Shown: positions 1,751 to 15,774, numbered from the stretch's first letter. The stretch is DNA of 17,184 bases from Paraphysomonas bandaiensis (GCA_965644295.1 CBFFRP010000005.1:1-17184), one strand, 5' to 3'. A program made the numbers and translations. The notes: generated by a model not told the origin, from the sequence alone.

Positions 1751-2003
1751 GTTTAAATCAACACACACTCTTCACCTTCTACAATCTGATAATAGTTATG
1801 GTTCCTGCCGGAATATACTCGGTCAGGGATACGGGATACGGTTTCATTGATGTAGATGTCAGGGCTTTCATTGTTGTCAGGAGTGCGGCGTGTCGTAAGT
1901 AGTTTCACAGACATATTTCTCCAAGCTCTGTAATCGTCGTGGTCTTGACACCATGGGTCTCCATGCCTGCCAAAGCAATGGCAAGCTTCTGCCAATGCTT
2001 GAG
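537..2003 (-). pseudogene. Degenerate multi-exon second ORF of the Harbinger-like element (Myb/SANT-like DNA-binding protein)
   Basis: Exon-like blocks on the minus strand: ~2003-1769; ~1637-1527 (GINSETIWKK..EIKKEV..INEFTPDFVILL, with stop/frameshift); ~1474-1309 (DETIPSGVQMRELLVKTVELSWNRKEAERIRRELAQ). The W..I...V..F....SG pattern resembles PIF Myb-like ORFs. In the DETIPSG exon, 2 of 3 differences between the copies are synonymous. Confidence 0.45.
1641..1749. repeat. (ATGT)n microsatellite, about 27 units, inside the transposon
   Basis: Perfect tetranucleotide run seen directly. Confidence 0.98.
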
Positions 2004-2244
2004 ACTATAAATCATTGCGCCCGGTGCTGTTTATGAGGTGTATGACTATTAATGAAGCTCCATTGTGTAAAAATGTCTTCCACTCTCGATTTCTGTCAGC
2101 CGAAGACAAAAAGACATTTTGTCTTTCGACGGATTTCTGTCTTTTGTCCTCCTATAACTTCAGCTTTTCATGCTCAGAAGACATTTTTGCCGAAAAATGT
2201 CTTCTGTCTTTTTGTCTTTTGTCTCACGACTATAATTAGTGGCC

Positions 2245-2392
2245 AAGAGAGAAAATCGCGATATACAATTTAATAGTAAAATACAGCACTGTATTCCGCA
2301 AAGTCATAGAGAACAAGTTTAAACTCAATAACTGAAAAAAACGTAAGTGTCGACCGTTTTTTGAGCAGTTAGTTATGGGTGAACGAACTGTA
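2245..2392. mobile_element. Possible end of a Tc1/mariner-type element inserted at a TA in an ankyrin exon
   Basis: Minus strand reads TA|CAGTTCGTTCACCCATAAC..., a TA+CAGT terminus, exactly where ankyrin exon similarity begins (ATA CGG GAC AAT, 2395-2406). The other end is not in the window. Confidence 0.35.
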
Positions 2393-2394
2393 CT

Positions 2395-3590
2395 ATACGG
2401 GACAATGGAAGTAACTCCTCTATACATACATGCATATGTAGAGTGTTATGAGGGCATGAGCATATGTGATAATTGTTATTGTTTTATAGAGTGGCCGTAC
2501 AGCTCTTAACTGGGCTGTCTCTAATGGTCATAGCGATATAGCTGTGTATCATATGAGAGCAGGAGCAGATTTAAGCATACGAGACAATGTAAGTAACCCC
2601 TCTATACATACATACACACATACATACATACATTCCTTCATGCATATGTAGAGTGTTATGAGGGCATGAGCATATGTGATTATTGTTATTGTTTTATAGA
2701 GTGGCCACACAGCTCTTCACTGGGCTGCCTCTAGAGGTCACGGAGATGTAGTTCAGTATCTTATGGGAGGAGGAGCAGATACTAATATACGAGACAATGT
2801 AAGTAACTCCTCTATACATACATATATAAGTAGAGTGTTATGAGGGCTCATATGTGATTTTTATTATTGTTTTTGTTTTCTAGCGTGGCCGTACAGCTCT
2901 TAACTGGGCTGTCTCTAATGGTCATAGCGATATAGCTGTGTATCATATGAGAGCAGGAGCAGATTTAAGCATACGAGACAATGTAAGTAACTCCTCTATA
3001 CATACATATATAAGTAGAGTGTTATGAGGGCTCCTATGTGATTTTTATTATTGTTTTTGTTTTCTAGCGTGGCCGTACAGCTCTTAACTGGGCTGTTTCT
3101 AATGGTCATAGAGATACAGCTGTGTATCATATGAGAGCAGGAGCAGATACTAATATACGAGACAATGTAAGTAACCCCTCTATACAAACATACATCATAC
3201 ATAAGTAGAGTGTTATGAGGGTTCATATGTGATTGTTATTATTGTTTTATAGGGTGGCCGTACAGCTCTTCACTTGGCTGCCATTAGAGGTCACAGAGAT
3301 GTAGCTGAGTATCTTATGGGAGGAGGAGCAGATACTAATATACTGGACAATGTAAGTAACTCCTCTATACATACATACATACATACATACATGCATCATA
3401 CATAAGTTATGAGGGCTCATGTTATGTGATATTTATTATTGTTTTTGTTTTATAGGATGGCCGTACAGCTCTTCACGTGGCTATATCTAGAGGTCAGAGA
3501 GATATATCAGAGTATCTTATAAGGAAAGGAGCAGATATTAATGTACGAGACAATGTAAGTAACCCCTTTTACATATACATACATACCTAT
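2395..3590 (+). repeat. Tandem array of ~184-210 bp exon+intron units
   Basis: Introns are homologous: GTAAGTAAC(C/T)CCTCTATACATACAT...GTTATGAGGG...TTATTGTTTT..TAG. Unit length varies mainly with the (TACA)n tract. Confidence 0.95.
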
Positions 3591-3982
3591 ATGGATATGT
3601 GGTGATGCAGTGTGTCACTTCTTTTTATGATGCTTTTTGTTATTTTTGCAGGAGGGAAGAACTCCTGTTGATGTGGCTAAAGATAGTGCGATGCGTGAGC
3701 TCATCAGAAACGCACATGTTAGTATGTGTACTGTATGCTTCATCGTATTCTCAGAACCAGAGACATACCCTCACTGGAATTATATGTGTATTGTATAGGC
3801 TGAGAGGCAGAGACAGCAAGAGGAGGACGCTGCTACCGCTTCAGAGGTATGTGTGTAATGATGTATTATATATGGTGTGATAGTATTGGTATTATACAGG
3901 TGTCGAGTATGTATTGGTTTTAGTTGAGTTAATGCGTATTGTATAGGCTGAGAGGCAGAGACAGCAAGATGACTTCAATTGA
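2490..3982 (+). CDS. Ankyrin-repeat protein, one repeat per exon; 5' end interrupted, possibly a recent pseudogene
   Basis: Six 99-bp phase-0 exons: 2490-2588, 2700-2798, 2884-2982, 3068-3166, 3253-3351, 3456-3554 (e.g. SGHTALHWAASRGHGDVVQYLMGGGADTNIRDN). Then 3652-3717 (EGRTPVDVAKDSAMRELIRNAH), 3799-3846 (AERQRQQEEDAATASE) and 3947-3982 (AERQRQQDDFN*). All introns are GT-AG and the spliced frame is open. An upstream exon remnant (2395-2406) has a mutated donor GGAAGT. Confidence 0.92.
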
Positions 3983-4359
3983 ATACTGTCAGATGTGTTG
4001 TTGAATTGGATGTTGGTTGTTTACACACATATCATGCATCTGTATATTCATGTCTGAATGTAGGACGTGCTATGCTGGTCATCGGAGTAGTATGTATGTC
4101 GTAGAGTATGTCAGGTGTTATAAATTAGCATTTTTAAAAATTCGGGATTTGGTCTATGAAACAGTTTTTTCTATAGAAATCATGTTTTGATTACACTTTA
4201 GCATAAAGTATACTACTGTATTTCTTTTTGTCCATTATATTATATTGAAAGTCTTATTATTAGCAATTTAGGCGTTAAAAACCTGCACCAACTTAGTAGC
4301 TAGATGAATGCTAGACAAACTAGTTAGACCTCTACCTGTAACTAATCAGTACACACTTT

Positions 4360-7986: not shown

Positions 7987-8865
7987 TCATGGAAGGTCTT
8001 GTGAACGAAGCCATTGCAGAACACTAACGTGTTTACCCTTTGCAGCTGCCTCTATGCAAGTGTCTTTATTCCAGGGACATGGAGGGTCCTGTGAACGAAG
8101 CCACTGTAGAGCATCCAATTGTCCAGACTGTGCAGCTGCAAGGCAAGTTCTTTCATTCCAGGGACATGGAGGGTCCTGTGAACGAAGCCACCATAGAACG
8201 TTCAAGTTCCCATGCCTAGCAGCAACTTCGCAAGTAGTTTCACCCCATGGCTCTGGAGGGTTCAGTGAACGGAGCCAATGTAGAACATTCAAGTGCCCAC
8301 CTTTAGCAGCACCAGTACAAGTGCTTCCAAGACATGAATCTAAAGCGTCCTGTGAACGAATCCACTGCAGAACATCCAAATGCCCACCTTCAGCTGCACA
8401 GCCACAAGTAACCATATTCCAGGGACATGGAGGATCCTGAGAACGGAGCCACTGCAGTACCTCCAAGTGTCCACCCCTAGCAGCAGCATAACCAGTTCTT
8501 ACATGCCAGGGACATGGAGGGTCCTGAGAACGGAGCCACTGCAGTACCTCCAAGTGTCCACCTTTAGCAGCAGCAGTGCAAGTGTCTTCATTCCAGGGAC
8601 ATGGAGGGTTCAGTGAACGGAGCCACTGCAGTACCTTCAAGTGTCCACCTTTAGCAGCAGCAGTGCAAGTGTCTTCATTCCAGGGACATGGAGGGTTCAG
8701 TGAACGGAGCCACTGCAGTACCTCCAAGTGTCCACCCCCAGCAGCAGCAGTGCAAGTGTCTTCATTCCAGGGACATGGAGGGTTCAGTGAACGGAGCCAC
8801 TGCAGTACATCCAAGCGTCCACCCCCAGCAGCAGCATTCATGATATCCATATTAGACATATCCAT
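7987..8865 (-). CDS. Ankyrin-like repeat protein, ten 29-aa AAxGGHLEVLQWLRSQDPPCPW repeats (292 aa)
   Basis: Uninterrupted ORF with 87-bp tandem periodicity; the N-terminal repeats are nearly identical at DNA level. The start is uncertain because a possible acceptor (ttatcag) lies just upstream of the ATG. Confidence 0.9.
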   Translation of the reverse strand: MDMSNMDIMNAAAGGGRLDVLQWLRSLNPPCPWNEDTCTAAAGGGHLEVLQWLRSLNPPCPWNEDTCTAAAKGGHLKVLQWLRSLNPPCPWNEDTCTAAAKGGHLEVLQWLRSQDPPCPWHVRTGYAAARGGHLEVLQWLRSQDPPCPWNMVTCGCAAEGGHLDVLQWIRSQDALDSCLGSTCTGAAKGGHLNVLHWLRSLNPPEPWGETTCEVAARHGNLNVLWWLRSQDPPCPWNERTCLAAAQSGQLDALQWLRSQDPPCPWNKDTCIEAAAKGKHVSVLQWLRSQDLP

Positions 8866-9036
8866 ACTGATAATATGATGAGATTATATGAGACTAATAG
8901 AGAGCTAATAGACTGTAGAATAATGAGATGAGTTGATATCTATACACACATATCCACACACCAGTACACGAGGACACAGACCACACATACATATGGGACA
9001 GACCACACAAAAGAAGTTTCCTCAACATGGACACAC

Positions 9037-9376
9037 ACATACATACATACATACATACATACATACATACATACATACATACATACATACATACATACAT
9101 ACATACATACATACATACATACATACATACATACATACATACATACATACATACATACATACATACATACATACATACATACATACATACATACATACAT
9201 ACATACATACATACATACATACATACATACATACATACATACATACATACATACATACATACATACATACATACATACATACATACATACATACATACAT
9301 ACATACATACATACATACATACATACATACATACATACATACATACATACATACATACATACATACATACATACAT
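9037..9376. repeat. (ACAT)n microsatellite, about 85 units
   Basis: Perfect run; it is the homologue of 1641-1749 within inverted transposon copy 2. Confidence 0.98.
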
Positions 9377-13666: not shown

Positions 13667-13940
13667 ATGATGTGTTGGGAGTGTGTAGTTATGGTATAAT
13701 AGTGTAGATGTACGTACATGTATGTAGAGTCCGTATATATATACTGCTGTACATACTCTGTACATACATGTATGTCCATACCTACTCCAGTGTATAGATA
13801 TACCCACACACACAGCAGTGTATGTATGTATATGTATGTCTACTCACAACTCGCAGTCGTCTATGACTCACTCCCTACATCTACACACCACATCACACAT
13901 ACATACATACACCTCCTTACACAATCTAATCTATCTGATC

Positions 13941-15774
13941 ATGACCACCCCATTACTCCCTTCCTCTTCCACTTCCCTTCCTTCACACTCTCTTGTCATT
14001 CTCATTCATCTCACTCTTATTTATTTCCTTGAAAACTATAGTCGCAGTCTCATCACCGTGTCGCCGATCCCTTATATACCATACAATACATACAAATACA
14101 GTCTATTAACAGGCCCCATATATGCAGTGATGTATACATACAGTGGTCTCGTCCTCTCACTTATACATACTTTACAATCCATACGCGTCATCTCACTATC
14201 CATTGCATGCTTTCTATTCTCATCTGCTGTATTCTTTACATCATTTACACAAAACTTTTGGCAGATATCTTTATTGCGTATGTTAATGGGATTAGCTCAG
14301 AGTATAGTCACACCATTTTCATGTGGTTTAATCAGTTATTACATTCATCCGACATATCGAGGGGGGGCGTATAGTGTATATAACTTTGGCGTGTATGTAT
14401 CTTTCTCTGTTGCCTTGTCATTAGGGACATACATGTATGATACATACGGATATAAAGCCGGTTACTTATTATTTGGTTTAATTGGTGTGTTATTTGCTGT
14501 ATTAACACCATTTGTTATCCCAGAACCACCTGATGATAAGGATTGTATTAGTTCAGATTGTCGAGAGGATGAGGATGGTGTTGAGGTTAGTCTTATGGGA
14601 TCAAATACACATCAACCGCATAGACAGGATGGTATGATGGATACACTGTTAAGAGTCTTACATGTATGGAGAGAGTCCCCTGCACTCTATATTCTCTGTA
14701 TTGGGACTGGAATCAGAATAGGTGCAGGCTATATATGGTCTGCCTACACGGCTGTGTACTTCTCTGAGATGTACGTTACCGATGAGGAACACAGTGGTAC
14801 GTGTACGTACTCCTATAATGCGACCTATACCGGCTCAGGAGGAAATACTTGTGGAGCGGAGTATCCCTATTGCTTTGCTTCAGGTTTGTAGTTACTTCTT
14901 GAACCGCATATTTGTTGTGAAACTTTTGAAGTGATGATGTTATGCGATGATACATCATCTAAGTGTATATGTACAGGGGAATGCAAGGATATCAATATCT
15001 TCCCGTGGCACAACAGTGGTGTATCGCACTCCCATCTCTATGCGTATATGTCATGGGTTCCGCTGGTTGGATCTGGTCTAGGAAGTATGTTGGGGGGATA
15101 TTTTTCTGACATACTGGTCAGAAGCAAGCATTATGGCCTTTATGGACGGCCTTTTGTAGCAGCTACGAGCTCCGTTGTTTCACTGCCATTTGTAATTCTA
15201 GCTCTGTTGGCAGGATATCCTGACTGCTTCTTGTATTTTATACCGTCAGGGCTGGTGAGTGGATGTCCTGCTTGTTAATTATTAAGTGTGGGAATGCTTT
15301 CCTTGCGTGCATATGCGTGACCTTTGTGGATTTTTGCCCTGACCTTAAGTATAGACTGGTGAGATGTACATTGGAGCATCGCTAGCCCTGGTAGCAGACC
15401 TTACTCCTGTGGATCTAGTGGTACCCTCTGTCGCGCTCTTTATGTTCATTGTTACCATCATTGGCGGGAACGCGACACTCTTGGTTCCTCTTACCACAAG
15501 TTATTTGATACCTCACACGTACCATAATTTTCAGTTCACTGCTGCTCCTCCTGTTGGATCTATTGATACCAGCAGTGGCCATAGTACCTACAGTTATAGC
15601 TACAGTGTGGACAGGCGCAGTGGGTATGATTTGCAAGAAGCGTTGCTTTACATTCAGTGTGCACTGTATTTTTTATCCGCGGTTGTGTACTACATGAGTG
15701 CCTGGGTCTTACTCAAGAAAAGACACACACTCTCCAAGTCGAGTAGCACAAGTGTGGAAAGAACGAAAGCTTGA
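13941..15774 (+). CDS. Major facilitator superfamily transporter (spinster-like), 3 exons, 546 aa
   Basis: Exons 13941-14883, 14977-15254 and 15355-15774 join via GT-AG introns into 547 codons. About 12 hydrophobic segments; MFS motifs LLRMLMGLAQS, RGGAYSVYNFGVY and GSMLGGYFSD. Confidence 0.9.

Follow-up and report, generated by a model that had tools for sequence, protein, structure and literature searches.

The described systems that come closest to the genes analysed here are found in brown algae and in fungi. In brown algae (Ectocarpus and kelps), candidate receptors of the LRR-ROCO and NB-ARC-TPR types carry one repeat per exon, undergo shuffling of these exons and display site-specific positive selection (Zambounis et al. 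2012, PMC3341825; Teng et al. 2024, PMC11378527); in Ectocarpus, the cassettes of the ROCO genes are also reported to be alternatively spliced (Zambounis et al. 2012, PMC3341825). Fungal NOD-like receptors (NLRs) harbour near-identical ANK, TPR or WD repeats, in which positions of the concave face are positively selected (Dyrka et al. 2014, PMC4986451). These fungal repeats are not encoded one per exon and lie C-terminal to NACHT/NB-ARC and effector domains.

The present analysis concerns a stretch of 17,184 nucleotides from Paraphysomonas bandaiensis, taken as a whole and hereafter called the window, together with the relatives of the ankyrin gene that it carries. We put at roughly three in four the probability that the window contains the repeat-coding part of a gene that is transcribed and belongs to a large ankyrin-only family, characterized by a fast-changing binding face and by the turnover of its exon cassettes. 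Like the brown-algal LRR and TPR genes, this family devotes one symmetric exon to each repeat, displays tandem duplication and shuffling of exons as well as selection on the ligand face, forms gene clusters and is found in a stramenopile host. However, its repeat is an ankyrin encoded by 99 nt in phase 0, rather than an LRR (72 nt, phase 2) or a TPR (126 nt), and its canonical members, as seen in the sampled arrays, are devoid of any ROC-COR, NB-ARC or kinase part. With the repeats of fungal NLRs, it shares near-identical ankyrin repeats, concerted evolution with exchange of repeats, and a handful of selected positions on the concave face (inner helices and beta-hairpin). Unlike fungal NLRs, the proteins are ankyrin-only, and the first coding exon of the relatives encodes an ankyrin N-terminal cap (N-cap) instead of a NACHT/NB-ARC domain. 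The family joins the fungal type of ankyrin repeat with the brown-algal exon build, in ankyrin-only proteins. No published description of it was found in the literature on ankyrin exon cassettes in diatoms and on 99-bp ankyrin exons.

Two other ankyrin systems provide points of comparison. In vertebrates, many repeats of the membrane-binding domain of ANK1-3 are said to lie on single 99-bp exons; unlike the present family, ANK1-3 are single-copy, conserved structural adaptors, without known hypervariability and without a known family of cassette arrays. The engineered DARPins have the same build as the family, i.e. an N-cap, n internal repeats of 33 residues and a C-terminal cap (C-cap). Unlike DARPins, the family is natural and germline-encoded, and its proteins end with a Q/R/E-rich tail encoded by a variable number of exons.

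The ankyrin gene of the window and its expression

Between positions 2490 and 3554, the window carries six phase-0 exons, all exactly 99 nt long, which code for one 33-residue ankyrin repeat apiece; a pyrimidine tract and AG stand before each exon, and GTAAGT after it. These six exons had been placed at the same coordinates in a first-pass annotation, and exon boundaries, translation and Pfam all confirm them. Searches of Pfam and PDB were run exon by exon. PF00023 (clan CL0465) matches every exon, model 1-33 to exon 1-33 (E 2e-5 to 5e-11; 24.9-42.8 bits for a cut-off of 21.1), and among PDB sequences DARPins (E down to 6e-55) and ankyrins match best. The exons thus qualify as ankyrin repeats, defined as 33-residue units with the G-x-T-A/P-L-H, G-H and G-A-D motifs that exceed the curated Pfam cut-off. 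The features of the gene and of its upstream region are given below, with the splice joints seen in contigs from X1 and X2, two runs of the organism, and from X4, a polyA marine metatranscriptome.

1900..2245, no strand assigned: dispersed repeat element of ~345 bp, upstream of the gene, of which the rest of the genome holds at least 30 copies (73-97% identity)
2252..2322, no strand assigned: terminal 71 bp of another dispersed repeat, present at 99% identity in at least 12 copies
2375..2410, + strand: putative new first coding exon of 12 codons (3' remnant of an N-cap exon), predicted from an in-frame ATG and a GTAACT donor
2490..2588, + strand: ankyrin exon 1, 33 codons, phase 0; departs from the framework at five positions and ranks last of 202 exons in family HMM score
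2700..2798, + strand: ankyrin exon 2, recognized by its anatomy and Pfam; covered by an RNA contig (X4, record 16)
2884..2982, + strand: ankyrin exon 3, differing from exon 1 at 1/99 nt
3068..3166, + strand: ankyrin exon 4, a mosaic, joined by splicing to exon 5 in X1 and X2
3253..3351, + strand: ankyrin exon 5, recognized by its anatomy and Pfam; GT..AG joint 3166>3253
3456..3554, + strand: ankyrin exon 6, a typical repeat of the family from a lineage separate from that of exons 1-5; joint 3554>3652 in X1, X2 and X4
3652..3717, + strand: C-terminal capping half-repeat exon of 22 codons, found at the end of most sister arrays and aligning to DARPin C-caps; joint 3717>3799
3799..3846, + strand: tail exon of 48 nt (16 codons, phase 0), Q/R/E-rich (AERQRQQ... 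unit), present as a cassette in varying numbers among relatives; joint 3846>3947
3947..4147, + strand: last coding exon and 3' UTR, with a TGA stop at 3980-3982; RNA contigs reach 4147

The GT..AG joints 3166>3253, 3554>3652, 3717>3799 and 3846>3947 were seen across the contigs of these three data sets. The contigs of X1 and X2 match the locus of the window with zero mismatches, and contigs extend to 4147. The assignment of X1-X3 to RNA is a guess, for which the spliced joints themselves argue. As spliced joints occur in X1, X2 and X4, the gene of the window is transcribed and spliced as read. Another joint, 2798>3068, which is found in a contig (contigs and not raw reads being considered), would leave out exon 3. 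It was not accepted as exon skipping because 12 + 29 nt are common to the sequences at the exon 2/3 junction and at the exon 3/4 junction, and the contig can be explained as a chimera of the assembly graph at k=31.

One site of the gene also varies among the data sets. At window position 3497, the X4 metatranscriptome and X8 read C for G, which changes codon 14 of exon 6 from Gln to His, the consensus of the family; this G>C change reflects allelic or strain variation, or else a paralogue.

Several other repeated or coding sequences were observed in the window. A tandem cassette is also formed by the 48-nt tail exon (AERQRQQEEDAATASE), of which the window has one internal copy and sister genes (L035, L038, L045 and L033) three to five. 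The introns of the family contain (ACAT)n/(ATAC)n microsatellites whose length varies between a few units and over 200 nt (for example at 2604-2633 and 3367-3404 of the window and in the N-cap introns of L035 and L046), and long (ATGT)n and (ACAT)n runs are found at 1641-1749 and 9033-9376. At 7987-8865 on the - strand, 4 kb downstream of the cassette gene and in opposite orientation, an intronless ORF of 292 aa encodes about ten ankyrin-like repeats of 29 residues (GGHLEVLQWLRS..PPCPWNE.TC..AA), with a Pfam match to Ank_4 (E 2.5e-29) and a tandem repeat (TRF) of period 87 in 9.7 copies with 80% match; this is a second, different gene of ankyrin-type repeats. Exons of a Major Facilitator Superfamily transporter lie at 13818-15774 on the + strand (PF07690, E 4e-20 for 14202-14888).

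Size, integrity and gene build of the family

When the array of the window is compared at the DNA level with the genome (62.5 Mb, 669 contigs), at least 494 matches are found. The family was sampled through ~150 kb of fetched loci, a set that leaves aside contigs C218, C430, C470, C85 and others, and 202 distinct intact 99-nt ankyrin exons were extracted from it. The sampled arrays hold 3-33 repeat exons and, in the window as in its relatives, each repeat corresponds to one symmetric exon of constant length within a tandem array. The proposal of the first-pass annotation that these exons belong to a family of ankyrin exon cassettes is therefore sound. An nhmmer scan of the same loci found 243 exon copies, 229 of which (94%) have both an open frame and AG/GT boundaries; the family is therefore not decaying. 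The possibility that it consists of pseudogenes was rejected on this ground and because the gene of the window is spliced and expressed.

The relatives share a common build, in which an N-cap exon with an ATG precedes the repeat exons, and the C-cap exon is followed by one to five 48-nt tail exons and a terminal exon. Their canonical N-cap exons, which encode an N-terminal capping half-repeat, span 31-33 codons from the ATG (32 codons in L032), and at least 22 of them can be detected in the genome by DNA similarity. In the sampled relatives of the subfamily, no signal peptide, membrane segment, signalling domain or other domain was found, and inspection of the N-caps by eye revealed neither N-myristoylation nor a signal peptide that would be consistent across members. 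The subfamily is therefore ankyrin-only. A fusion to a kinase was also looked for and not found in the sampled arrays: no same-strand kinase lies beside the closest arrays, and the nearest Pkinase matches are 2-10 kb away from the sampled arrays, on the other strand. Consequently, the earlier description of the locus as part of a receptor system finds no support in this subfamily, whose sampled relatives lack any signalling, membrane or secretion part.

Some loci of the genome deserve separate mention. L041 (G000:C508), a contig of 9.8 kb, consists throughout of 33 consecutive intact cassette exons, with neither N-cap nor C-cap in the sampled sequence. At G000:C186:139789-147381, the N-cap exon is matched in part (84%) six times at regular intervals within 8 kb, which suggests a tandem cluster of short genes or of N-cap-like exons. 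Homologues of silicon transporters are present at seven or more loci, which points to a silicifying host.

Growth of the array by duplication and exchange

In a tree of 192 family exons, exons 1-5 of the window are monophyletic, whereas exon 6 belongs to a separate lineage. The histories of exons and introns disagree. Exons 1 and 3 are nearly identical, with the single difference listed above, while their flanking introns differ at 5-6/79 nt; introns 2 and 3 differ at 1/85 nt, while exons 2 and 3 differ at 22/99. Furthermore, exon 4 is a mosaic, as it follows exon 3, with 3 differences, over its first 81 nt and matches exon 2 exactly over the remaining 18 nt; of the eight nucleotides that distinguish it from exon 3, five are packed within 6 nt (clustering P 0.0004). 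Duplication and shuffling of exons are thus seen in the clade of exons 1-5, in the near-identity of exons 1 and 3 and in the mosaic exon 4. The disagreement between exon and intron histories and the mosaic structure of exon 4 indicate that exon-plus-intron units were duplicated in tandem and that short tracts were exchanged. A single ancestral exon gave rise to exons 1-5 in situ, through tandem duplication of exon and intron together. Short-tract gene conversion or unequal exchange would have made the mosaic exon 4, and the (ACAT)n runs of very variable length in the introns may favour misalignment. As the 99-nt exons are symmetric and lie between short conserved introns, cassettes can be duplicated, lost or exchanged while the frame remains intact.

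Codon changes among the six exons

The first-pass annotation had counted 8 differing codons between exons 2 and 5 and 13 between exons 5 and 6, all of them replacements, and 13 replacement codons plus 1 silent codon between exons 1 and 2, and had read this pattern as a sign of diversifying selection. A recount gave exactly the same numbers. However, all-replacement counts are not by themselves evidence of selection because about 76 of the 99 sites are non-synonymous. Fisher tests on these three pairs gave p 0.42-0.47, pairwise NG86 dN/dS values of the window exons range from 0.6 to 2.1 on about 23 silent sites, and a codon model fitted to the six exons gave an omega of 1.00 (LRT p 0.94). Under random neutral hits, the probability of finding no silent-only codon is 0.087 for exons 2 and 5 and 0.024 for exons 5 and 6, and that of finding at most one is 0.17 for exons 1 and 2. 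The counts from six exons are therefore unable to separate selection from neutrality, and the reading as diversifying selection finds its support in tests at the level of the family.

Nearly all the third-position changes among the six exons fall inside codons in which the amino acid changes as well. The claim that the conserved codons are invariant down to their silent sites is true and goes beyond chance (LRT 9.3, p 0.002). Indeed, 13 codons (2, 4, 5, 6, 9, 13, 16, 20, 25, 26, 27, 32 and 33) are identical in nucleotide sequence in 6/6 exons; their synonymous rate is below the exon-wide rate and 0/8 four-fold sites vary, in a test that is partly post hoc.

The replacements are unevenly distributed along the repeat. 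Classes of positions were tested within the window on three path-disjoint pairs (1v3, 2v5 and 4v6). Over all sites, the ratio is 1.73 (p 0.16). At the hypervariable positions defined from the family, pN is 0.34 vs a pS of 0.07 (Fisher p 0.0007), and at the positions defined a priori from DARPins pN is 0.25 (ratio 3.5, p 0.011). The framework of the window has a pN/pS of 0.56-0.79 (0.76 on the path-disjoint pairs) vs 0.39 in the family. The changes at codons 1, 3, 11, 12 and 31 that had been singled out earlier do coincide with the hypervariable surface, but position 8, the most variable of the family, had gone unnamed. N33 is invariant in the window exons, yet position 33 is hypervariable in the family.

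Selection across the family

The codon tests used here are home-made approximations of NG86, FEL and M1a/M2a, with a fixed topology derived from 99 nt and optimisation on a grid. Among the exons of the family, amino-acid entropy peaks at positions 8, 12, 3, 1, 33 and 11. A tree-free test was made on 87 independent closest exon pairs. Their overall pN/pS is 1.07, with values of 2.4-3.2 for positions 1, 3, 8, 11 and 12 each (p 4e-7 to 2e-14), 1.7-1.9 for positions 31-33 and 0.07-0.5 for framework positions. The introns flanking these pairs diverge by 0.083 and 0.095, compared with a pS of 0.087; as introns diverge as much as silent sites, the latter are a fair yardstick, and constraint on silent sites was rejected for the family as a source of omega values above 1. 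Bootstrapping gave the following pN/pS values for classes of positions, the hypervariable ones having been partly chosen from the data on which they were tested.

Positions 1, 3, 8, 11 and 12: 2.75 (95% interval 2.22-3.40)
Positions 24 and 31-33: 1.74 (95% interval 1.38-2.18)
Other positions: 0.94
Framework: 0.39 (95% interval 0.30-0.48)

This pattern was found again in two disjoint subsets of loci, within single arrays and among the closest pairs alone (pS 0.037), where the hypervariable positions reach 2.59 (interval 1.58-4.01). It is also found with a class defined a priori as the positions that differ between DARPin repeats in PDB alignments, i.e. exon positions 1, 3, 11, 12, 31 and 33: with the window excluded, their pN/pS is 2.41 (1.94-3.02) vs 0.75 at the other 27 positions.

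In the approximate site models applied to the 202 collected exons, mean omega is 1.00 under M0 but is strongly split by site, with surface sites above 1, in line with the earlier annotation. The FEL-like grid gave positive LRTs of 19.2 for site 8, 15.0 for site 12, 14.3 for site 32, 8.5 for site 33, 5.5 for site 31 and 4.0 for site 24, and revealed purifying selection at sites 21, 22, 28, 25 and 26. Sites 1, 3 and 11 (beta 2.2-4) are non-significant in this test because alpha, the synonymous rate, is also raised there. No positive LRT exceeded 9.2 among the 165 sites of five neutral simulations with re-estimated trees, compared with the 14-19 observed, and an artefact of the pipeline was rejected on this basis. 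The grid version of M2a is preferred to M1a (LRT 293), which rejects the nearly-neutral model, with about 24% of sites at an omega of about 3.3 and a posterior of about 1 at sites 1, 3, 8, 11, 12, 32 and 33. Tree-based site models may be inflated because recombination between cassettes is real; the pair test, being tree-free, avoids this inflation.

The approximations of NG86, FEL and M1a/M2a all find positive selection on the ligand face of the family. The beta-turn and inner-helix face (positions 1, 3, 8, 11 and 12, and more weakly 24 and 31-33) accumulates replacements at 2-3 times the rate of silent sites and introns, and the framework residues are under purifying selection across the family. 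The idea of a family of variable binders under diversifying selection, put forward from the window exons, is thereby supported at the level of the family and modestly within the window.

The positions concerned are very close to those varied by protein engineers. The register of DARPins on exon positions was read from PDB alignments, and the numbers of their randomised positions are used here as reportedly defined. The match to the randomised surface proposed in the first-pass annotation is confirmed, as the natural hypervariable exon positions 1, 3, 11, 12, 31 and 33, plus 24, coincide with what we take to be all six randomised positions of DARPins and the partly randomised position 26 (exon position 24). 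Unlike in DARPins, variation also affects positions 8 and 32, which are there a fixed Leu and a fixed Asp, respectively.

The window copy as an atypical member

The gene of the window differs from the build of its relatives at its 5' end. Homology to the family begins only at about 2391, late within an N-cap exon; the copy retains its C-cap but only the last ~12 codons of the N-cap exon. The two dispersed repeat elements (1900-2245 and 2252-2322) occupy the place of the 5' half of this exon, the window is absent from the matches of the DNA search for N-caps, and RNA and DNA contigs diverge from the window sequence at 2322. The ATG at 2375 and the GTAACT donor after 2410 could delimit a putative first exon of 12 codons. 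In addition, exons 1-5 show the strongest framework deviation of all sampled exons and occupy ranks 0, 1, 5, 6 and 9 from the bottom of the 202 exons in family HMM score, exon 6 being ordinary, and exons 1 and 3 carry five framework replacements each (H7N, R15S, E19V, L21H and I22M), compared with a maximum of four elsewhere. The truncation of the N-cap and the low HMM ranks indicate that the window copy is probably less constrained than its relatives, while still being expressed. We infer that it is a damaged or newly re-started member and no model for the family; the locus is mainly useful as an example of cassette duplication and of conversion at the sub-exon scale.

Alternative explanations

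These peculiarities raise the question of whether the six exons are simply recent tandem duplicates of a damaged copy that drift unconstrained, in which case the all-replacement pattern would carry no signal of selection. The codon-model and Fisher results for the six exons, the N-cap exon cut short by repeat elements, the position of exons 1-5 near the bottom of the HMM ranks, the five framework replacements of exons 1 and 3 (L21H among them) and the raised framework pN/pS compared with that of the family all agree with such neutral or relaxed evolution. It is nevertheless unlikely, given that the six exons keep an open frame and both splice sites and give rise to spliced mRNA in three data sets, that replacements concentrate at surface positions defined outside the window (p 0.0007 and 0.011) with a framework ratio below 1, that silent sites of the conserved codons are entirely unchanged, and that the family as a whole is 94% intact with extreme heterogeneity among sites.

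Concerted evolution without any selection for novelty offers another account of the same data, in which conversion would homogenise introns and silent sites, and old, fixed surface differences would mimic an omega above 1. The mosaic exon 4 is what conversion would produce, and the near-identity of introns 2 and 3 beside divergent exons, that of exons 1 and 3 beside divergent introns, and the silent-site invariance of conserved codons point in the same direction. This account is, however, highly doubtful: the excess of replacements persists in the closest pairs and within single arrays, and intron divergence across the family equals silent divergence and is no lower. Moreover, homogenisation alone would erase the surface differences too unless these were selected, so that some selection favouring or maintaining diversity is needed under either reading. 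The faster replacement of the surface would reflect either diversifying selection or a selection that opposes homogenisation there. The reading retained is therefore that of a large, transcribed ankyrin-only family with a fast-changing binding face and cassette turnover.

Possible roles and significance

In such a family, the proteins would act as soluble intracellular binders, forming a germline library of DARPin-like proteins, and fast-changing ligands, such as proteins of pathogens or of mobile elements, would be plausible targets. A bolder proposal, to which we give a low probability, is that the arrays constitute a germline repertoire of soluble ankyrin binders for non-self recognition, directed against viruses, parasites or mobile elements. 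Their specificities would be continually renewed as exons are duplicated and short tracts converted, the donors being silent or truncated arrays like that of the window, and splicing mixes of the frame-neutral exons would possibly add variety. If this were true, the repertoire would be the ankyrin-based counterpart of the repeats of fungal NLRs and of the brown-algal ROCO and TPR receptors.

As evolution varies in this family nearly the positions that designers randomised, it is a natural experiment parallel to the engineering of DARPins. The family is a concrete, testable candidate for a recognition repertoire, with a gene build suited to the rapid turnover of cassettes.
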